Of a DNA stretch of 64,000 nt, positions 3,401 through 32,252 are shown one piece after another (position 1 is the first letter of the stretch; every line of letters begins with the position of its first letter). The notes under the pieces are model-generated. The model had not been told where the DNA came from. It searched no databases and saw nothing but the letters and a program-made list of their open reading frames with translations. Both the position numbers and the translations under genes were made by a program. The DNA comes from Haliotis rubra (Eukaryota). Location of the stretch: positions 1 to 64,000 of the forward strand of contig NW_025765438.1 of assembly GCF_003918875.1 (NCBI RefSeq), written 5' to 3'.

Positions 3401-3650
3401 ATTGATGAGTACCACTCTCGGTCTTGCGTAGGAAAACCCGAAGAAACTCAACCACCGCCAGATTTGCCCCCAGGCCACGATCTCACCAGGGACAGACCAG
3501 TCGTAGAGAAGATTTTACAGTCTAGGTGTATGGGAGGGTGTCGACACTACAAAGGTAATCGCCGGTGAAACCGAACCGATGGGTTACCACACACTGTACT
3601 ACCCGACATGCTGATGGAAGACTTCCATGCCCGTCAGACATGGACTATGA
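430..3650 (+). mobile_element. Ty3/Gypsy LTR retrotransposon pol (RT-RNaseH-integrase, possible chromodomain), heavily frameshifted
   Basis: Motifs read across frames: SPWAAPV.LV..RD.T.RF.VDFRRLN (~710-790), YLDD (~1055), CDASD (~1507), GRLGRWSILLSQ.D..I..RP.NGNADALS (~1750-1850), integrase HH-CC (~2265-2390), WSIDLLG (~2460), PF..VYGREP-like (~2900), VVEKILQSR (~3500). Confidence 0.93.
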
Positions 3651-3959
3651 AAACCAGACTTAGGACGCGGCGGGAACAACAACAGTCACCCGGCGGTACA
3701 GGAGCACTCCAAACACAGCAACCACCGTGGGTACCTAGGCGTACCGTTATGACATAAGTAGCCTTACACTTATCACACACACACCCAGATTGACCACATG
3801 CCACATATTGAATACAAAGAAAGGGAGAGCCCAGCTGTCCTGACTAGTTGATGGGAGGCAGGGCGTATCAACCAGTCACACTATAAGCCCATCGGTTAGA
3901 CAAACGAATTCTTAGGGAGAAGTTAAGACATTGGCCTATTAAAGTGAGGAGTTATGTTT

Positions 3960-4450
3960 TTCAAGATGAGGTATATGTGCACAACCTGTTGAGGGCGCAT
4001 TCTTGTGGGACAGAGATATGTATTACGCCCGTGGAGGCCGAACTTCCTGGTTTCTTATTCGGGCAGCGATATGCTTATTAGCCGATGGAGGCGACTTTCC
4101 TATAGTTTCTTGTCGGACCGAGATATGTATTAGCCCGTGGAAGCGAATTTCCTCAGAATATGAGAGATTTATATTTTTATAAGTGAATTAGCCTGTTGAG
4201 GCTGAGTCTTAATCCGATGAGATATGAATTAGCCCTGTTGAGAGGCAGAGTGTATCCCGAAGAGATATGAATTCCAGCCTGTTGGCGTAATCATCCCGAT
4301 GGGACATGTTTAGCTGTTGAGGCTGAGGAGATATGTGTATTACATGAGGGCGGGTGTGTCCGATGAAAGATACATTAGTCTGTTCATTTTGGTCATCCTG
4401 TCCGAGGAGGTTATTGTTTATTAGTCTGCTAGGGTTAAATTCTGGTTGAC
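3960..4450. repeat. Degenerate ~40-60-bp tandem repeats between pol and env
   Basis: Recurring gagatatg(t/a)attagccc..gaggc units. Confidence 0.65.
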
Positions 4451-12841: not shown

Positions 12842-15463
12842 CCCTTTCGCTAGTTATTTGTAAGGTGGAGAGAAGGAAATCATTGTCTGGTTTAGAGGAT
12901 CTGAAACAGGCAGGTTTCTTTCTGTCACTTGCAGGGATGGGTGATGCAACTAAGGTTTAACTTGTTGATGATATCCTTGAAAGGCTACGTNNNNNNNNNN
13001 NNNNNNNNNNNNNNNNNNNNNNNNNNNNNNNNNNNNNNNNNNNNNNNNNNNNNNNNNNNNNNNNNNNNNNNNNNNNNNNNNNNNNNNNNNNNNNNNNNNN
13101 NNNNNNNNNNNNNNNNNNNNNNNNNNNNNNNNNNNNNNNNNNNNNNNNNNNNNNNNNNNNNNNNNNNNNNNNNNNNNNNNNNNNNNNNNNNNNNNNNNNN
13201 NNNNNNNNNNNNNNNNNNNNNNNNNNNNNNNNNNNNNNNNNNNNNNNNNNNNNNNNNNNNNNNNNCTTCTGTATTATATTTTGACAACTGAAATCATTTC
13301 AAAGTATCAGCGTCAAAGTGAAAACAAAAAAAACACTGTAATCTGCTTTAACAAAAGTTCTAAACATCTGAATTGCTTATGTTTTGCACGGGATCGATCT
13401 CTAATTGGTAACGACACAATCTGGTTTATATTAAGGAACAAAATAAAATAGAACGAATAAAATCATACTTACAAATAGTATATGTCACGCTGCTGATTTT
13501 CCTTCGGGAGATATGCAACATTCAGGGACCAGGACTTACTGTAGGTGTCGCAGCTAAAGAGTGAATTCTTTGGCTTTTCACAGTACCACGGGAAACCGTC
13601 ATTTAGAGAAGTAAAGTTGCAGATGTCTCTTAGGTGGTTCCGTAACATGCTGCAGCTCGTACTCTCTTTCACCAAGAAGCCCCACCCGAACTCCCGTTTC
13701 AGCTGCCACAACGTTCCATGTTCAGCCATTATGGAATAGAACATCGCTAGTTCCTCCCTACGACGCTCAAGAAAGCAGCGAATCCTTCCCATGCCTGACC
13801 ACTGGACTCTGAGAAAACCCGTGTAGCTGCCGTTGTTGTTGTCGAAGACGTCTCCAGCAACTGCAACTTTGTCCTCTGTGTTTTCCATCCATAATCTAAA
13901 GAAATCGCCGCCAACTGTTTGCTTCTCGCCGTAATGATTATAAGTGTTGATCTCCACTTTTATGACGTCACCGAGTCTATACAGAGGCTGTGGATTTAAT
14001 AACGTCATTGTGGAGCGGTGTGCACTTGTGCACTTCCGGGTATCCCTTTGCTTACCTCCCTTGATCATGTTTGCCTCATTCAGATAGCGAGGAGCACCGC
14101 TTTCCACTCTTCCGCTGTTTGGTTCTACAATTATATGTACCTCAATTATGTCACTGAGGGGTACGTTTCTGCAAACACAATAATGATAAATGAGGTATGA
14201 ATTTTGATCAGTAAGGTTTGAAAAAGAAATCCATTACAGACCCATCCCCTTCAATTATCTTCTATCACTTTACAAATGTTGCTTGGAAACACCTTTTCGT
14301 ACAGATTGCACAATTGTTCATTTTCTGAATGCTCAACTATTCATCATTTGCCTTGCAATACGCCTGGTACATGTCATATTCATTCTTTCACTTACAGTTG
14401 GCTTGGCTCATGTCACGATCAGGTAGATTTTAATTACATGTAGTCATGTACCTATCATTCACCCAACAACTAACCAATCTTCTACCCACTCACCCAACCA
14501 ACCTCCTAGACACCCACCTATGCACCCAACCAATACATCTTCCAGCGAAAAAAAACAAACCAACAAACAAACAACCGAAATTGTCCCCAAACAACCAACC
14601 AACCAATCGATCAATTAATCGACCTGTCTATCAAATGTCCCATCAATGAATTTATGAAATCAACCACATCAAATTCACCAGTTAAAATCAAATCTAGAAA
14701 ACTTGACCAATTTAACCAAGTACGCAAGTTATTTATTAATAATCACATGCAACAAACCAAATAAGTATGACTTGACAAAAACCAGTAAAGCAAGTGCAAC
14801 ATTCAAATCATTAAATTAATCTTGTGTTGTTTGAACACGGGAAGGTAATATAGAGCACAGTTTACGTCCCCTGGGCAGGGGAATATTTAATCAAACTCAG
14901 CTGTAACAAGGTCAAAGATAAAACGGGAGTCCTTTAAAAATAACTGACTGTACCGCCAACAGGAGCCAACATATTACCCTGAAATGCGAACACTGTGTTC
15001 AAGCCTATATGTGTTTAGCATTAACTGTTGATCCAAGTCCGTTTCGTATTTTTAAATGAAGTGAAATGTAGTGTTATCATTGTTCATCTGTTTCTACATG
15101 ATCAATGACACTGTTTCAATAAATGATTTAGTAAATAATATAATATCGTACCTGTTTGCATCCACACAAAAAATATGATTATTTATGGAACATTAAAATT
15201 GATAATCCACTTTTTGTCCACTTATATGGGGAGAGAAGTGGATTTAGCATTTCACCATTTGAATTATTGGTTATTTTTGGTGTACATGGTTGAAATTGGT
15301 CTCGTCACTTTGGCTAAAATAATACATATATTTTCCATGTTTGTGTATATAGTAATTACCTGAATTTGTCCTCAAGTCTCTGCTTGTTCTTCCATATATA
15401 TACCACAATAACAGTCACGGTCAATATGCATAGGGTAAGAAAACATGATCTAGTCCGACTCAT
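12842..15463 (-). CDS. NXPE family protein, copy A; exons 15463-15360, 14168-13473, ~12900-12842; final esterase exon not in window
   Basis: Exon 1 is a signal anchor (MSRTRSCFLTLCILTVTVIVVYIWK); exon 2 carries GGDFFRL..D.NNGSY..W.G (neurexophilin domain); GT-AG junction phases match (2,2,1). Confidence 0.85.
12991..13265. other. Assembly gap (N run)
   Basis: N bases. Confidence 1.
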
Positions 15464-17527: not shown

Positions 17528-19986
17528 TATATATATGTTCAGAGACTACCATTAGTTTAATACTGGGGTCACTGTCGGCGTATGATTAGTCTCAGAGGGT
17601 TGATGCTCGTGCCAGGGGTAGTCTGAGGTTCTGGAGCCAACTGGTTTAGTGGTAGGTGCTATTATGGGATTAAAGAGATCGGGGTAGGGGCTAAATGTGT
17701 GGTAAGGATATGTAGGCAGAACTCAGTGTGAACGAGTGTGTGCAATAGATGAAAACTCCTCATGGATATCTGTAGTCAAAAGACACAGGCTCTTGAGCTG
17801 GACTCTGTAATATGCAAGGTCCTCGAACCGTTTTGTGTCTGACAGATATTTTGTCTCTTTAATGCTGATTTTGATATTTAATAAAGAACCATAACTGGGC
17901 ACTCGCTTCAGTCGACTGATTAGAGTACTGAACTATTTGAGTAGAGTTGAAAACAGATATAACACGTGACTAGAATACATTCCCCCTATATCTCCTATCA
18001 CTGAAAGTCATCATACTGTAACATATTTGAGCAATCATTTGAAAAGAAATCATTATGAAAGGACATTACAACAACGAATACGTCGCTTTTCCGGTATATG
18101 GGCATTTGACGGAAATGAATTACAATTGGTTAATTGATGAGTGTCCAACAAGTGTCAGAAAAGGGTAAAAATGTTCAAACGTACAATGGGCGGAAAAGAG
18201 ATGCTCTTTTTCAACAAAACCAATTGGAGAAAGTCGTGGACGGTTAACACGGGGTCGTTGGAATGTTCACAGACCAGGGATTTGAACTGAGGGCAAATCG
18301 TGGATTGGAACAATTGATGAGCACACCTAGGGGAGACGGATCAGCTGACGAATTAAGGCAATGGCATCGGCTGGTTAAGTCGTATTCCCCACCCGTCTAT
18401 GACAGAGAAGAGACATCATATAGTGAACCATAGTTCTAACCGTTGATGTATCTGGATGAATGTGGTTTGGCCCAAGGCCACCGTCATATCCCAGTAGTCT
18501 ATATACACCACTCTGTGTGCAATAGATGAAAACTCCTCATGCAATATATCTGTATATAGCAGTCCCCAATAGGCCACAAGCTCTTGAGCCGGATTCCTGT
18601 AATAAGCAAAGGGTCCTCGAACAGCAAGTGTGACACCAGGTGCCCGTTTAAGGAGAGACGTAGCTGCCCGAACAAGTCGCTGAACATGTTGGCGGTATAT
18701 GTCCGGGTGGACTAAATTGAAGTGGACATATAAATACAGCACCACAATGTCCACTGTGTTATTGGGCAAAGATTCAAGAAGAATATGCTGTGCTCGGTTA
18801 GTTAATGGAGAGTAACGTTCCTGTCCATGAAAGAGTGGGAATTCATGAGCAAACAAAGCCACGGAAAAATTGTCTTGCTTGTCCTCCAAGAGCTGAGTAT
18901 TTCGATTTTGTAAGTTGAGTGTGACGTGAAGGGCCTCCTTGAATTGACGACTGGTTGAATCCCCGGGGATCCATAGTCGTCGGTTCCTTAAACACTGTCG
19001 ATATGCCCGGGCTGTAGATTCTAGGGTGTCCAAACACAGCGTGGGTTTCCACTTAGTTATGTAAATAACTCCAACAGGATACTTGCGTTGCCAGGTATAC
19101 TTCGGCGAAAGTTGACTGCAGGGCGTTTTAGGCGTGTCCACCTTTTTATTCCCAGTTTCTGAAAGATGCAAAAAATAGGTAATTCAAATGCCAGATTGTT
19201 TTTGGGTGTTTTGTCTTTTTTTCTGTTCAACACCAAACGCATTCATCAATATCCCCTAATGGGTAAATGTGTGAAGTCCATTTCTGGTGTCTCCTGCCGT
19301 GATATTGCTGGAATATTGCTAAAAGCGGCTTGAAACCATACTCGCTCTCGCTTCAATATCCTGTTCCCATAGTGACAGTACCACCAAAAGTTATATGTAA
19401 GTTTTGGTGTTAAACTTCTTTTAAGTAGAGCCCGTGAAGATCCGGGTGAGAATTGGTCTTCAGCAGCCAATGACTGTCGCCCCGTGAGGGCCAGGTTCGA
19501 TATGGTCTTCAAAAACCCGTGCTTGTAAGAGGCGACTAAATGGATCATGTGGTCAGGCTCACAGAGGTGATTAAAACATGTATCCCAATTGCGTAGTTCG
19601 ATGGTCCAGATGTTGATCACTTGATTGTGTAGTCCAGATTCGATCGTATACAGAACGCCGCAATACAGGTTGAATATTGCTGAGTGTGGTGTTAAAAAAC
19701 AACAACCTATTAATCCTATAATGGGAATATTGCATAGTTTGAGATTTGATATATATTTGACACATACTTACCCATTTCGCTCGTTATTTGTAAGGTGGGC
19801 AGAAGGAAGTCATTGTCTGGTTAAGATGATCTGAAACAGGCGGTTTCTTTCTGTTACTTGCAGGGTTGGGTGGTGCAACTGAGGTTCAACTTGTTGATGA
19901 TATCCTTGAAAGGCTACGTTATACGTACATGGTGCAGGAATATATTTTAAGTTTTCTCGTTGATGAATCCACTAGCACAGATACGG

Positions 19987-20460: not shown

Positions 20461-21591
20461 GAGACATATGTTTTTTATTTGGACCTTCCATTTTATTGTG
20501 ACAACTGAAATCATTTCAAAGTATCAGCGTCAAAGTGAAAACAAAAAAACGCTGTAATCTGCTTTAACAAAAGTTCTAGACATCTAAATTGCTTACATTT
20601 TGCACGGAAACGTTCTTTAATTGGTAACGACACAATCTGGTTCATATTTAGGAACAAAATACTATAAAACGAATAATATCATACTTACAAATAGTATATG
20701 TCACGTTGCTGTGTTTCCTTCGGGAGATATGCTACATTCAGGGACCAGGACTTACTGTAGGTGTCGCAGCTAAAGAGTGAATTTTTCGGCTTTTCACAGT
20801 ACCACGGGAAACCGTCATTTAGAGAAGTAAAGTTGCAGATGTCTCCTAGGCTGTTCCGTAACATGCTGCAGCTCGTACTCTCTTTCACCAAGAAGCCCCA
20901 TACGAACTCTCGTTTCAGATGCCACAGCGTTCCATGATCAGCCATGGTGGAATAGAACATCGCTAGTTCCTCCCTACGACGCTCGAGAAAGCAGCGGATC
21001 CTTCCCATGCCTGACCACTGGACTCTGAGAAACCCGGTGTAGCTGCCGTTGTTGTTGTCGAAGACGTCTCCAGCAACTGCAACTTTGTCCTCTGTGTTTT
21101 CCATCCATAATCTAAAGAAATCGCCGCCAACTGTTTGCTTCTCTCCGTAATGATTGTAAGTGTTGATCTCCACTGTTATGACGTCACCGAGTCTATACAG
21201 AGGCTGTGGATTTAATAACGTCATTGTGGAGCAGTGTGCACTTGTGCACTTCCGGGTATCTCTTTGCTTACCTCCCTTGATCATGTTTGCCTCATTCAGA
21301 TAGCGAGGAGCGTCGCTAACTACTCTTCCGCTATTTGGTTCTACAACTATATGCGCCTCAATGGTGTCACTAAGAGGTACGTTTCTGCAAACACGAAAAT
21401 AAGGTTTGAAAAAATTCATGACAGACCCATCCCCTCCAATTATATTCTATTACTTTACAAATATTGTTTGGAAACACCTTTTTGAACAGGTTTCTGAATT
21501 GTTCATTTTCTCAAGGCTCAACTATTCATCAATTGCCTTGTAATGGGTATAGCATATGTCACGATCAGGTAGATTTTAATTGCATTTGATT

Positions 21592-22340
21592 TAACCATCT
21601 TCCACCCACCCAACCAACCCATCTCCACCCTCCCAACCAACCCATCTTCCATCCACCCAACCAACCCATCTCCACCGTCCCAACCGACCCATCTTCCACC
21701 TATCCAACAACCGTTCTTCCACCCTCCCAACCAGCCCAACTCTACCCTCCCAACCGACCAATCTTCCACCCACCCAACCCACCTATCTCCACACTCCCAA
21801 CCAACCCATCTTCCAACTACCCAACCAACCCATCTCCACCCTTCCAACCAACCCATCTCTACCTTCCGAACCGACCAATCTTCCACCCACCCAACCAACC
21901 CATCTCTACCCTCCCAACCAACCCATCTTCCAACTACCCAACCAACCCATCTCCAACCTCCCAACCGACCAATCTTCCTTCAACCCAAACAACCCATCTC
22001 TACCCTCCCAACCGACCAATCTTCCACCCTCCCAACCAACCCATCTCTACTCTCCCAACCGACCAATCATCCACCCACCCAACCAACCCATCTCCACCCT
22101 CCCAACCAACCCATCTTCTAACTACCCAACCAATCCATCTCCACCCTCCCAAACAACCCATCTCTACGCTCCCAACCGACTAATCTTCCACCCACCCAAC
22201 CAACCCATCTCCACCCTCCCAACCAACCGATCTTCCAACTACCCAACCAACCAATCTCTACCCTCCCAACCGACCGATCTTCCACCCATTACCCAACCAA
22301 CCCATCTTCCACCAACCCAACCAACCCATCTTCCAACCAA
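21592..22340. repeat. C/A-rich minisatellite (ccaaccaacccatct(t)ccaccctc, ~25 bp)
   Basis: About 30 degenerate units; much shorter in paralog A (14460-14600). Confidence 0.9.
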
Positions 22341-22656
22341 CAAAACAAAACAACCGAATTGGCCCCAATCAAGCAGCCAACCAATCGATCAATTAATCGA
22401 TCTGTGGATCAAATGTCCGATTGAAATCAACCACAATGCCATCAAATTAGCCACTTATCAAAGCCATAAAACCTAACCAATTTAACCAAGTAAGCAAGTT
22501 GATATATTAACATTCATATGCAACAAACCAAATAATAATGAATTAACAAAAACTAATAAAGCAAGTACAATATTCTAATCAATATGTCAGTCCTGTATTA
22601 TTTCAACACGGCAAAGTAATATAGAGCACAGTTTACGCCCCCTAGGCAGGGAAATA

Positions 22657-22786
22657 TACTGGACAAAATAAGTTAGGGATATTGGTATTTTTATGACTGA
22701 TATTTTATCAGTGTGTCAATGAATAAGTAGATCATTATTCATAATTTCAAAATTTACATATATCCCAAACTATTTTTGTCTAGTAC
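22657..22786. mobile_element. ~130-bp Tc1/mariner-type MITE
   Basis: TIRs tactggacaaaataagttagggata / tatcccaaactatttttgtctagta; TA context; absent from paralog A at ~14880. Confidence 0.75.
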
Positions 22787-22846
22787 ATATGATCAAGTTC
22801 TGGTGTACCTGGTTGAAAGATGAAACTACAGTCCGTTACAAATTAC

Positions 22847-24887
22847 TACGGAAGCGTAGTAGGGCCACGGTGAAAACATTTTTTGGGGTCACTATCTCCT
22901 ACGTAGGACTTAATATCTCCTACGTAGGACTTAGTATCTCCTACGTAGGACTTAGTATCTCCTACGTAGGACTTAGTATCTCCTACGTTGGACTTAGTAT
23001 TTCCTACGTAGGACCCACCCACCAATCTCCTACGTAGGACATACTATCTCCTACGTAGGAGTTAGTATCTCCTACGTAGGACTTAGTATCTCCTACGTTG
23101 GACTTATTATCTCCTAAGTAGGACTTATTATCTCCTACGTAGGATTTACTATCTCCTACGTAGGACTTAGTATCTCCTACGTAGGACTTAGTATCTCCTA
23201 CGTAGGACTTAATATATCCTTTTTAAGGATGGTTACTAAGTTGAGAAATGTTTGGCTATGCAGGACGTGAGATAGTCGAAATGTGAGTCAGTGAATATGC
23301 ATGACACTAACGCAGTGTTACTGTACAGTGTTATTGTGTGTGTATTACGTTAGGGTGATGTGGACCCTGTTCTAATTGCAGTTATGGAGGTTTGGGTATG
23401 GTTATGGTTAATCTATCATACATACATCTATTCACACACAAACACACACACATACACAGAGAGAGAGAGAGAGAGAGAGGAGGGTGGGATGGTTGGAGTG
23501 AGGTTGTGATATGAAACTCGGGTTATAACACGACCTCCGCAAGTTGTTGCTTGTCTTGATGGGGCTAAGTTGGATCGGATGCAACGCTCGTTTGCGGTTT
23601 TATTCGTAATTGTTTGCAGGTTGACTTGACTGGGGTGGACAAGTGTTGAGTGCGGCGTCAAACAATACGAAATTCAAAAAGGCAAAGAATTGTCATTATA
23701 GTTATTTGTATAAATATAAGGGGATACGTACACATAGATTGCCACCGATAGTCTAAGACACGTCCGTACACGCAGATTATGATTCATGTGCAACGACCTC
23801 TGAAATATCCAATGCATAATAGTAAAGTGTAACATATAACAGTGAACTAACTGCAACGCGTAATAGTAGAGCAAACTGAACGCAAGGCAGTAAAGTATAA
23901 CAGTCGGTCCAACACAGTACTAATGTGCAACAGTTAGTTGAACACATGACTCTAATAGTGAAGGAAACAGTAGACTCTAATAGTAAATGAAACACATGAT
24001 AGTAGACTCTAACAGTAAATGAAACACATAACTGTAGACTCTAATAGTGAATGAAACGAATGACTGTAGACTCTTACAGTGACTGAAACAGTGGAACAGG
24101 AGATTGTGTGCGTGTCTGGGGCTTTAAGTCGACCGTTTCAGATTAATCCATAAAACGTATATCGATCATCTCATACAGGAAATATTAAGTACTACGTAGG
24201 AGATACTATGTCCTACGTAGGAGATAGTAAGTCCTACGTAGGAGATAGTAAGTCCTACGTAGGAGATACTAAGTCCTACGTAGGAGATATTAAGTCCTAC
24301 GTAGGAGATATTAAGTCCTACGTAGGAGATAGTAAGTCCTACGTAGGAGATGCTAAGTCCTACGTAGGAGATATTAAGTCCTACGTAGGAGATACTAAGT
24401 CCTACGTAGGAGATGCCCACCTAGGATATACTAACTCCTACGTAGGAGATACTAAGTCCTACGTAGGAGATATTAACTCCTACGTAGGAGATACTAAGTC
24501 CTACGTAGGAGATATTAAGTCCTACGTAGGAGATAGTAAGTCCTACGTAGGAGATAGTAAGTCCTACGTAGGAGATAGTAAGTCCTACGTAGGAGATAGT
24601 AAGTCCTACGTAGGAGATACTAAGTCCTACGTAGGAGATATTAAGTCCTACGTAGGAGATACTAAGTCCTACGTAGGAGATACTAAGTCCTACGTAGGAG
24701 ATACTAAGTCCTACGTAGGAGATGCTAAGTCCTACGTAGGAGATACTAAGTCCTACGTAGGAGATGCCCACCTAGGATATACTAACTCCTACGTAGGAGA
24801 TACTAAGTCCTACGTAGGAGATATTAAGTCCTACGTAGGAGATAGTAACCAAAAACATTTTCACCGTGGCCCTACTACGCTTCCGTA
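22847..24887. mobile_element. Non-autonomous foldback DNA transposon (IS3EU-type termini) with inverted subterminal 21-bp arrays
   Basis: 30-bp TIR tacggaagcgtagtagggccacggtgaaaa at both ends; 6-bp TSD aattac (22841-22846, 24888-24893); absent in paralog A. Confidence 0.88.
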
Positions 24888-25399
24888 AATTACTGACTGT
24901 ACCGCTAACAGGAGCCAATTTACCACAAGAAATGCGACGACTGTGTTCAAGTGTATATTTTTGTAGCATTCGCTGTTGATCAAAGTCCGTTTCGGTTTTT
25001 TAAATGAAGTGAAATTTAGTGTAAACACTGTTCATGTGTTTCTACATGTTCAATTACACTGTTTCAATAGAAGAATTGGTAAATAATATTATATCGTACC
25101 TGTTTGTGTCTACAAAAAAGATATGATTATTCATTTTAATTAATAATCCACTTTTTTGTCCACTAATATGGGGAAAGTAGTGGATTTGGCCTTTCCTCAT
25201 TTGAAGTATTGGTTATTTTGGTGTAAAAGGCAAATATTATGTATGACAACTTCTTCTTTATTGCATGGCACAACGTTTCTGGGCTATTCCTTGCCCCTTC
25301 GCCAGGGCATGCCCATTATCTGTACATCTTACTCTATCATCTCCCGTTTCTTATCCAATTTATTGTATATACATGCAACACTGGTTTCTTGTACATTTT

Positions 25400-29392: not shown

Positions 29393-32252
29393 TCAGTCCT
29401 CCGATAGCAGAGCGCCACCGAAATATGATGAACTTGGGTAGATATCACGTGAGAAGGCCATCTGCACCCACGTTTCCTCCCCCTTGTCCAGATGAGTTAC
29501 CGTAATGGCAGAAGCATCAGTTTCATCAATGCTCGAGTCCGTCTCCGTGTAGCCGTTGGCCATGATCACTCCTCCTGACTTGATGATGTCGAAGGACATG
29601 TTAGTGTTTGCATGCGTCAGTGCCAGATGTGTCCAGAAGACGTAGGTTCCAGAGACTGGAGCAGTGAACGTTCCCGTGCTGGTGCTGTAGCCAGAGCCTT
29701 CGTTGTAGAGGATGGTGCTGAATATCAATGGCGTGTTTTCGGATGATGGACTTGAAGGGTAGTTCACATTGAATGCCACATTTCTGGTCTTTACTTCTGT
29801 AGATTAACGCAAAAAACCCAACAACAATTAGATCACAAAATAAGTAGATTACCATTCAGCAAGTGGAATGTATCAGTGTAGTTTATAAATATCAAGACAT
29901 TTCTTTACCCCGGACGTATGAAAATGTTATAAAAACTTACAGTCAAGACAGTCAGTTCGGCAAATTGTTCAAAAGCATTGGATTGGAATTGAACATTTAA
30001 AATGCTTACACTGACTGACTGAGTTTGGTTTTACGCCGCTTTTAGCAATATTCCAGCAACATCACGGCGGGGAACACCAGAAATGGGCTTCCGCATTGTA
30101 CCCTTGTGGGGATTCGAACCCGGGTCTTCGGCGTGACGAGCGAACGCTTTAACCACTTGGCTACCCCACCGCCCCTAAAATGCTTACACTGACTGACTGA
30201 GTTTGGTTTTACGCCGCTTTTAGCAATATTCCAGCAACATCACGGCGGGGGACACCAGAAATGGGCTTCACACATTGTACCCATGTGGGGATTCGAACCC
30301 GGGTCTTCGGCGTGACGAGCCAACGCTTTAACCACTAGGCTACCCAACCGCCCCTAAAATGCTTACAAGACCAACCAGTTAACCATGAAACCAGAAAGTA
30401 ACCTTCATTTTTCTTTTTAAGAAGGGATACAATATGTCATACTCTATGACCTTATAGCCAATAAGGGTTGACATAATTAAGGAAACAGAAATAATGTTCT
30501 TTCTCATAACAGAATATGGTCATAAATATATTCCTGAGAGCATGATCATTATGCGTACGGCACATCGTGTGTTCGGTAACACTTCTGAAGCTAAAATGTC
30601 GACTAAATTACCCCTTCTGAAGTATGCTAACAGGACACAAAACAGATAAACGTACGATCATCAATGGAACACTATGTTTTCCGTAATATTATGGGAACAT
30701 TGTCAATCTTATGCACATCTACTTGCCTTTGAACAGAATCTATCTGGTATTGTTAACCGAAATTGAGGCATGCAATTGTAAGCCCTTCCCTGATATGGGG
30801 TGATCTTCTCCAAGACATTCATCAACGTTTAGTGACCTCGGTGAGGCGGGCCTGCATACATGCACAAGGTAGACACACGCTACTCTAGATGGGACTTGCT
30901 TGTGAACACCCTGTTGTGTTGCGGCCCATTTGCATATGCCAAATGCACTTTTATTATGGACTATTGATCGATACCGTACATTGAAATATTTGTCTTTTCA
31001 TGTAATAACATTTCATTTTCGTCACTAAACGTTTTTCACCAATTCTGGTTGTTGTTTGTGTGTCACAATACCTTTTTGACTTCGGTTATAAAAAATCGTT
31101 TAAGAGTAGTAATTAGAAACGAGCACTGACCATCCACTGAATCTAAGATGGTAGATTATGAATGGTTCCAGTTTAGATATCCTATTGAAGAAGATCTGCC
31201 TAGCTATTCTCGAAACGTTCGTATCCCTACGAACTTTTTAAGCCCATTATTAACACATTGGCTACGATTAGAGATAATAATTTCTAGGGCTACCCTCCTG
31301 GTAATGTAAATGGATGCACACGCGTTTTTACCGAATTTATCCTGAACAAGAGCTCACCTTGTAAAACCTTCAATAGTGATAGTTTGTTTTCCATGGACTG
31401 CTTCTCAACCACAGATAAGTTGTTTTTCAAAGTTAAAACATCGAAGATGGCCAGACTGAGGTTACTCTGTGCTAAGTGAAGATCCCTCCAGATTGAATGT
31501 ATATCCAGCCTGACAAGGGACATGTTGGAATAGGATGACTTCATATCGTCCTCAAGCTTATCGATATGTTTAGATGCAGTATGAGCTAGCAATTTGGCGG
31601 CTTGGAGTTTCATGCTTTCTTCCGACTGTTTCTCTGTGAATGTTTGCACCCAGGAAGACATATTTTGATAGAAACCATGTCCTTCTGTCTTTACGTCGTA
31701 CACAGTCGAGTTCACAAGATTTAGTTGTTTGTTTAACTGCTTGACATCAGACATTACCGCTTTTACCTGTGCCGTGTTCAAGTTCACATCGTGACTGATG
31801 GCATCCAGAAGTGTTTGATTATGATGAACACTATCATGCTGATAACCATGTGTCATATCCTCCACTTGTGTCTTGACCATGATGAGTTCATCCGATGTTG
31901 AACGAAGCTCTGCCTTCAGTGATGAAACTTCGTGTTTCAAAGATGATATTTCAGCAGCTGCCAACTGTTGTCGTGTTTCGCTCGACTGTAGTTGTGTTCG
32001 AGTTGTGTGTAAGTCGTTCATGGTAGTCTGAAGCTGTGACTGCGTGGCCTGGAGATCTTTCTTTGTGGCATGCAGTTCAGACTGGACTTGTGAGGTTGTT
32101 GTTTGAAGACTTGTCAAAGTTTGCTCAAGCAGTGACACATGATTCAAAAGACTGGGCATGTCTGCAGAACCATCTGAATTTGTCATTGGCAGGATTAGTC
32201 CCGACAGAGATCCCGCCAGCATCACACACAAAAATACAACCGCCACGTACAT
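29393..32252 (-). CDS. Secreted C1q-domain-containing protein (signal peptide + coiled coil + gC1q), ~432 aa; exons 32252-31358 and 29796-29393
   Basis: Signal peptide MYVAVVFLCVMLAG; heptad-rich coil; phase-1 GT-AG junction; gC1q motifs VAF..F..ILYNEG.GY..TG.FTAPVSG.Y.F..L.KG..TWV..F.G.LL. Confidence 0.92.
30011..30354 (-). mobile_element. Two head-to-tail family A tRNA-SINEs in the C1q intron
   Basis: Copies at 30011-30175 and 30189-30354; taaaatgcttaca at 29998, 30176 and 30355. Confidence 0.93.

Follow-up and report, generated by a model that had tools for sequence, protein, structure and literature searches.

A foldback-type transposon family of the blacklip abalone with arms of palindromic 21-bp units, 6-bp target site duplications, and a HECT-like cargo version

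INTRODUCTION

A non-coding, non-autonomous transposon of the foldback type occupies positions 22847–24887 of the DNA analyzed here, the first 64,000 nucleotides of contig NW_025765438.1 of the blacklip abalone Haliotis rubra (hereafter, the window). The 2,041-bp element is one of roughly 300–400 copies of its family in this genome. It is bounded by perfect 30-bp terminal inverted repeats (TIRs; TAC...GTA) and by 6-bp target site duplications (TSDs), and its arms are two inverted arrays of a 21-bp unit built around a perfect 12-bp palindrome. Elsewhere in the genome, the same ends enclose much longer elements, including an 11-kb version that carries a HECT-like gene.

The explanation that best accommodates these features, and in which as a whole we have moderate confidence, is that of a cut-and-paste DNA transposon with foldback architecture whose transposase would be supplied in trans, most likely by a member of the IS3EU/GingerRoot group. 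Such an enzyme would recognize the 30-bp termini and integrate with a 6-bp staggered cut, a signature of integrase-like DDE enzymes such as those of IS3EU/GingerRoot, and would mobilize the 11-kb cargo version through the same ends.

AN INSERTION UPSTREAM OF AN NXPE EXON

The initial annotation of this locus proposed 30-bp TIRs with TAC...GTA ends, a 6-bp TSD (aattac), and an empty site near position 14940 in a paralogous NXPE copy, and each of these is borne out. The 30-mer TACGGAAGCGTAGTAGGGCCACGGTGAAAA has only two exact sites in the window, namely, 22847–22876 on the plus strand (starting with TAC) and 24858–24887 on the minus strand (ending in GTA), where none would be expected by chance. 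AATTAC is read directly outside both ends, at 22841–22846 and 24888–24893, and was recovered in the TSD survey described below. When the left and right flanks of the element are aligned with the paralogous DNA near 14.9 kb (76% and 89% identity, respectively), the unoccupied target appears there as a single AATAAC at 14939–14944, with neither element nor footprint. Because the paralogous site is empty, the element must have inserted after the duplication of the two NXPE paralogs.

On the minus strand, the Neurexophilin-domain exons of these paralogs occupy 13469–14107 and 20685–21419; an NXPE4_C exon was placed at 18416–19171. The element sits 1.4 kb upstream (5′) of the exon at 20685–21419, in an intron or the 5′ flank. 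As an annotation of this locus, the element is an insertion of ordinary kind and fair age, located upstream of an NXPE exon. A C/A-rich tandem repeat with periods of 47, 70, and 117 occupies 22002–22339, between the NXPE exon and the element. The left flank (22612–22819) is an extremely high-copy repeat, with a word depth of ~600,000 in run X1 versus ~130 for the adjoining unique DNA, which places the insertion site within or next to a SINE-like repeat. Downstream, at 29393–29779 on the minus strand, lies an open reading frame (ORF) with a full C1q domain (E 7e-19).

ARMS, MIDDLE DOMAIN, AND FOLD-BACK POTENTIAL

Inward of the left TIR, a spacer of A, T, and G runs (22877–22892, plus strand), the length of which differs among copies, leads to the first array. 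Tandem Repeats Finder (TRF) reports period 21 in both arms, with 15.4 copies of the unit (TCCTACGTAGGA followed by CTTAGTATC) at 22893–23220 on the plus strand and 32.6 copies, inverted, at 24177–24848 on the minus strand, in line with the mirror-oriented arrays of about 15 and 31 units first noticed. The arms are mutually inverted at 91–94% identity. The perfect 12-bp palindrome TCCTACGTAGGA occurs at 41 sites in the window, all within the arms (12 left and 29 right), with 0 expected.

The arms enclose a non-coding middle domain of 956 bp (23221–24176, plus strand), the conserved core of the short family, which includes a (CA)n(GA)n microsatellite and 3.9 copies of a 32-bp repeat at 23967–24090. 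It holds no ORF longer than 84 amino acids (aa) and has no Rfam match at gathering score. Rfam yielded nothing beyond sub-threshold, miRNA-like hits, which stem from the palindromes.

As had been surmised, the element has a strong predicted potential to form a long hairpin or double-stranded RNA. The minimum free energy calculated by ViennaRNA for the single strand is −1061 kcal/mol, versus about −535 kcal/mol for shuffled sequences, and the predicted fold joins 345 of the 380 bases of the left arm to the right arm, the longest perfect helix being 59 bp. The element stretch was found in none of the RNA runs.

GROWTH OF THE ARRAYS

The unequal arms of the window copy record how such arrays grow. 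A variant block had been reported twice in the right array, and GATGCCCACCTAGGATATACTAAC indeed recurs there at 24412–24435 and 24763–24786 (plus strand), 351 bp apart. This sequence is a degenerate, 36-bp-spaced unit that is a family-wide feature (family form GATACCCACTTAGGAGATACTAAC), and the window copy possesses two identical, privately mutated versions of it. When the right arm is aligned with itself, identity is 96.3% at a shift of 351 versus 88.8% at a shift of 21, and the arm amounts to ~1.9 copies of a 16-unit (351-bp) block. Duplication of this block in the window copy explains why the right arm is about twice the left and shows that the arrays grow by multi-unit (segmental) duplication. 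Across the family, the number of units per arm ranges from 1 to 99, and the two arms of a copy are usually unequal. Variable unit number together with private block duplication is the behavior of unstable tandem DNA without selection. In the favored explanation, the palindrome-bearing subterminal arrays are inherited family features that expand and contract by unequal exchange or slippage, involving single units as well as multi-unit blocks, and a block event of this kind made the right arm of the window copy twice the left.

Could the units instead serve a dimeric transposase domain as phased operators and be maintained by selection as a platform for cooperative binding? Subterminal repeats act as binding sites in the Ac, En/Spm, and P-type elements, the core of the abalone unit is a perfect dyad, and in most copies the first unit keeps a conserved distance of ~50 bp from the tip. 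The TIR, moreover, holds five of the six bases of the half-site, as GTAGGG. The spacing of the units is likewise regular, with exactly 21 bp in 913 of ~1,010 intervals between neighboring palindromes (~90%; 26 loci), but a fixed period is inherited automatically whenever a unit is duplicated. Nor does conservation single out the putative operator. All 21 positions are conserved at 95% or more except position 14 (T 86%, A 13%) and position 17 (G 65%, A 17%, C 16%), an estimate that favors the palindrome given that units were located by it, and spacer positions 15, 18, 19, and 20 are conserved equally with the palindrome. No greater constraint is visible on the palindrome than on most of the 9-bp spacer. 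Furthermore, copies with only 1–7 units per arm have perfect or 5/6 TSDs, just like copies with 30–66 units, and unit number is asymmetric and altered by block duplication. Selection for a phased platform is thus possible but unsupported, and we regard it as doubtful. Within the trans-mobilization explanation itself, the units may nonetheless hold half-sites for transposase binding, judging from the resemblance of GTAGGA in the unit to GTAGGG in the TIR.

The suggestion that the element could seed satellite DNA finds no counterpart in the assembly, where 3,438 perfect adjacent unit pairs (~72 kb) were counted and the largest array seen measures ~2.4 kb.

THE FAMILY IN THE ABALONE GENOME

A genome-wide search for the TIR, as the initial annotation had advised, returned 656 matches at up to three mismatches, versus 0 for the reversed control, and 215 of them are exact. 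The base flanking the exact matches is C in 124, G in 48, T in 22, and A in 21, the C count being inflated by the secondary amplification of one truncated fragment. With the 956-bp core as query, 405 candidate copies were recovered; 39 other copies that were scored are 90–96% identical, and all but one of these (38 of 39) cover at least 925 of the 956 bases.

Both ends were seen in 16 copies, which range from 434 bp to 22 kb and mostly measure 1.1–2.4 kb. All 16, the window copy included, terminate in TAC...GTA. Perfect 6-bp TSDs flank 13 of them (CAATAC, CAAACC, GATATC, GGTTGC, CAACCT, GCTATC, CTAAAG, GTTAAC, ATTTCT, CATTAC, CGTAAG, AATTAC, and GGTTTG), all unrelated in sequence; two further copies have TSDs that match at five of six bases, and one has none. 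The first description of the element hinged on whether other copies would share its arrays and 6-bp TSDs, and they have both.

Such dispersal bears on the alternative that the structure involves no mobile insertion at all and arose by local inverted duplication, or as an artefact of assembling a tandem repeat. Palindromic tandem DNA is easily misassembled, and the Logan unitigs fall short of spanning the element. Against this stand the hundreds of copies dispersed through the genome, which share the exact ends and a conserved core and differ in their 6-bp TSDs, as well as the clean paralogous empty site and the presence of family words in sequencing runs of at least three labeled organisms. 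The artefact reading is refuted, and its residual probability is negligible. The runs of organisms A and B abound in family words; in organism C, contigs of which match the core at ~91%, these words are rarer when compared with the flanking high-copy repeat.

Several rearranged forms accompany the standard copies. Two mini forms, at C1081:74972-75602 (631 bp) and C1458:69534-69967 (434 bp), are devoid of the core, and the former, which has no TSD, is essentially one array between two TIRs. Eight of 30 sampled exact TIRs (e.g., C2:4252763-4255792) share the outside flank AGGGTTTAGTAC and a further ~1.4 kb upstream, in which 117-bp repeats occur; they represent an old truncated copy, consisting of a TIR, a few units, and the edge of the core, that was re-amplified inside another repeat. 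At C7:261235-261663, a two-headed left end comprises a TIR, 10 units, and 54 bp of outside flank in tandem, such that flank and TIR recur 304 bp apart. It may be a product of aberrant repair or transposition.

LONG VERSIONS WITH A HECT-LIKE CARGO GENE

Following TIRs that have no near partner into 10–20 kb of adjoining sequence revealed long elements with the family TIRs and arrays. One, at C91:188179-210172, spans 22 kb and is flanked by the TSD GGTTTG; another, at C238:83135-94215, spans 11 kb and has lost 9 bp of its right tip. The two share a 7.9-kb interior that is 97–99.5% identical, and the C91 copy has an extra 11.7 kb of nested repeats. Within this nested block (L043:3969-6333) are ~13 copies of a 178-bp satellite-like repeat. 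When 7.2 kb of the long interior was used as query, collinear matches of 96–99% identity were found in C837, C1302, C2182, and C2841 and partial ones in C2506, C2555, C279, C1096, and C2464, with exact TIRs at the expected distances in C837, C2841, C2506, and C2555. The 11-kb version exists in at least six copies that are 96–99% identical. A 345-bp piece of the long interior (L048:8006-8351) also occurs at 20 or more dispersed loci at 93% identity; it is a short interspersed repeat that was nested in the ancestor of the long element.

The sole gene in the long interior is an ORF of the 650-aa class with a weak Pfam HECT match (C238:87995-89937; in C91, L044:3244-5253), broken at a different place in each copy. 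Its gene family has at least 40 loci in the genome, and its homologues are patchily distributed: a second H. rubra family (48%), the sturgeon Huso huso (50%), beetles, the pearl oyster Pinctada, and gobies, several of them with the Pfam HECT domain. One H. rubra protein among the homologues (P0001) matches the assembly at 100% identity, which independently supports blacklip abalone as its source. The patchy distribution suggests that the gene is carried by transposons and moves horizontally, and that it is not a piece captured from a host. A parallel is found in the Pack-type cargo transposons, such as Pack-MULEs and the gene-carrying GingerRoot elements, in that the 11-kb version ferries one HECT-like gene between the family ends and has transposed as a unit. 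Unlike in Pack-type elements, the cargo here constitutes an entire gene family, multi-copy in its own right.

THE SEARCH FOR A TRANSPOSASE

An autonomous partner encoding an IS3EU-type DDE transposase, as initially envisaged, was sought in the long copies, at sampled TIRs, and, by profile scans, near the listed TIRs of the genome, and was found in none of these. Between the family ends of the 11-kb and 22-kb copies, where all ORFs of at least 120 aa and most smaller ones were tested, there is no transposase; apart from the HECT-like gene, the ORFs scanned have no significant Pfam match and none to a transposase. At each of the 22 independent TIRs sampled, the sequence inward of the TIR proved to be the non-coding core, the HECT interior, or arrays. 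Among the exact TIRs listed by flanking base, no pair lies 3–10 kb apart.

Genome scans with the profiles rve_3, IS3 (NF033516), and IS481 (NF033577) gave many integrase-like hits, mostly retrotransposon integrases, and none falls within 20 kb of a listed TIR. The top IS3 hit, the one inspected, is the pol gene of an LTR retrotransposon and was rejected. The nearest hit, at C91:1711892-1712419, lies 23 kb from a TIR, about the distance expected by chance. It is one of several IS481-profile hits with long N-terminal coverage, the others being C404:107007, C1662:27194, C2148:944729, and C1335:44098.

One other locus juxtaposes a family TIR with integrase sequence. In C446:2204000-2213999, a 3.2-kb piece is repeated in tandem at least three times at 96.6–97.3% identity, and each repeat begins with a solo TIR and two units. 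These are joined directly to a Maverick fragment comprising a truncated polB (YTDTDS motif) and a c-integrase, beyond which lies a THAP-like ORF (3605–3970 within that interval). As the polB is truncated by the TIR and the whole piece is tandemly repeated, the TIR–Maverick junction looks like a rearrangement and not an element end, and the polB and rve ORFs were rejected as a partner.

WHICH ENZYME MOVES THE FAMILY?

The C446 junction nevertheless raises the question of whether a different or undescribed integrase-like enzyme, for instance a Maverick/Polinton c-integrase or an unclassified DDE transposase, mobilizes the family, in which case its IS3EU-like ends would be coincidental. The absence of an IS3EU-type gene near the TIRs among those listed is in keeping with such an enzyme, as is the fact that Polintons, too, generate 6-bp TSDs and insert by integrase-type chemistry. 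Polinton termini, however, are AG..CT, not TA..TA, and these elements measure 15–20 kb and encode polB and capsid genes; none of these traits occurs in the complete copies of the abalone family. Maverick sequence is present in 0 of the 16, and the sole TIR-adjacent polB/rve is the truncated tandem fragment at C446, with the look of a rearranged insertion. Membership in Maverick/Polinton was accordingly rejected, and we judge the broader alternative of a different enzyme unlikely. Dada elements, which make TSDs of 6–7 bp and insert into specific small-RNA genes, agree in TSD length but were rejected, as the 14 target sequences seen here are unrelated and lie in ordinary DNA.

The IS3EU/GingerRoot group provides the closest match. 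According to Kojima and Bao (2023, PMC10045372), TA..TA termini are invariable and 6-bp TSDs usual among complete IS3EU families, and GingerRoot, with 6-bp TSDs and mostly TA..TA termini, belongs to the same lineage. Frequent gene capture and relatives in Crassostrea gigas have been reported (Cerbin et al. 2019, PMC6839031). The abalone family resembles this group in its TA..TA termini, seen in every complete copy, in its usual 6-bp TSD, in carrying host-like gene pieces, and in the existence of mollusc relatives. The described members differ in being 4–13 kb long, with simple TIRs of 100–150 bp and an integrase-like DDE gene (PMC6839031; PMC10045372), in contrast to the unique 30-bp TIR, the tandem-array arms, and the lack of any transposase found here. 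IS3EU/GingerRoot is the best-fitting superfamily and probably the mobilizer, the enzyme class being deduced from the ends and target duplications; TSD length and two terminal bases have little power to classify an element, and the assignment is unproven because no autonomous partner was found. The foldback, non-autonomous TIR transposon of the initial annotation, with its arrays, TIRs, family-wide 6-bp TSD, and IS3EU hallmarks, stands; its IS3EU membership is probable, no transposase having been found in the long copies or next to the listed TIRs.

Structurally, the family belongs to the foldback class, with long inverted arms of tandem subrepeats and a variable middle domain. Within this class, FB and Galileo make TSDs of 7–9 bp. 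Those of Tetris are 8–10 bp (PMC4079207). Long inverted arms of tandem subrepeats around a variable non-coding middle are shared with Drosophila FB, Tetris (PMC4079207), Galileo (PMC3573991), Tm1 (PMC3169594), and sea-urchin TU, as are highly variable, asymmetric arms, an abundance of rearranged copies, and the usual absence of an autonomous partner. FB, Galileo, Tetris, Tm1, and the like belong to the MuDR/Foldback or P superfamilies, whereas the abalone family has a strict 6-bp TSD, TA ends, and a short 21-bp unit with a perfect 12-bp palindrome. The MuDR/Foldback superfamily, characterized by 8–10-bp TSDs and a MULE-type transposase, was rejected on account of the 6-bp TSD and the lack of a MULE domain in the ORFs scanned.

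IMPLICATIONS

No foldback form of IS3EU/GingerRoot was found in the literature searched, and a survey of mollusc transposons omits this superfamily (PMC10294476). A bolder proposal, which we put forward only tentatively, is that the abalone elements would constitute the first foldback lineage of IS3EU/GingerRoot, that the 21-bp units would be operator sites of the missing integrase-like transposase, and that the family was recently active, as the 96–99% identity of 11-kb copies bearing a transposon-borne, HECT-like ubiquitin-ligase gene may indicate. If this is true, the family would offer a tractable system for studying end recognition in a barely studied superfamily.

The family provides a clean record of subterminal array growth, in which block duplications are tagged by private mutations, and it associates these ends with a HECT-like cargo gene whose distribution is patchy and transposon-like. 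The combination of foldback arms with a strict 6-bp TSD and TA ends would, in turn, show that a third, integrase-like superfamily has independently evolved the foldback architecture.
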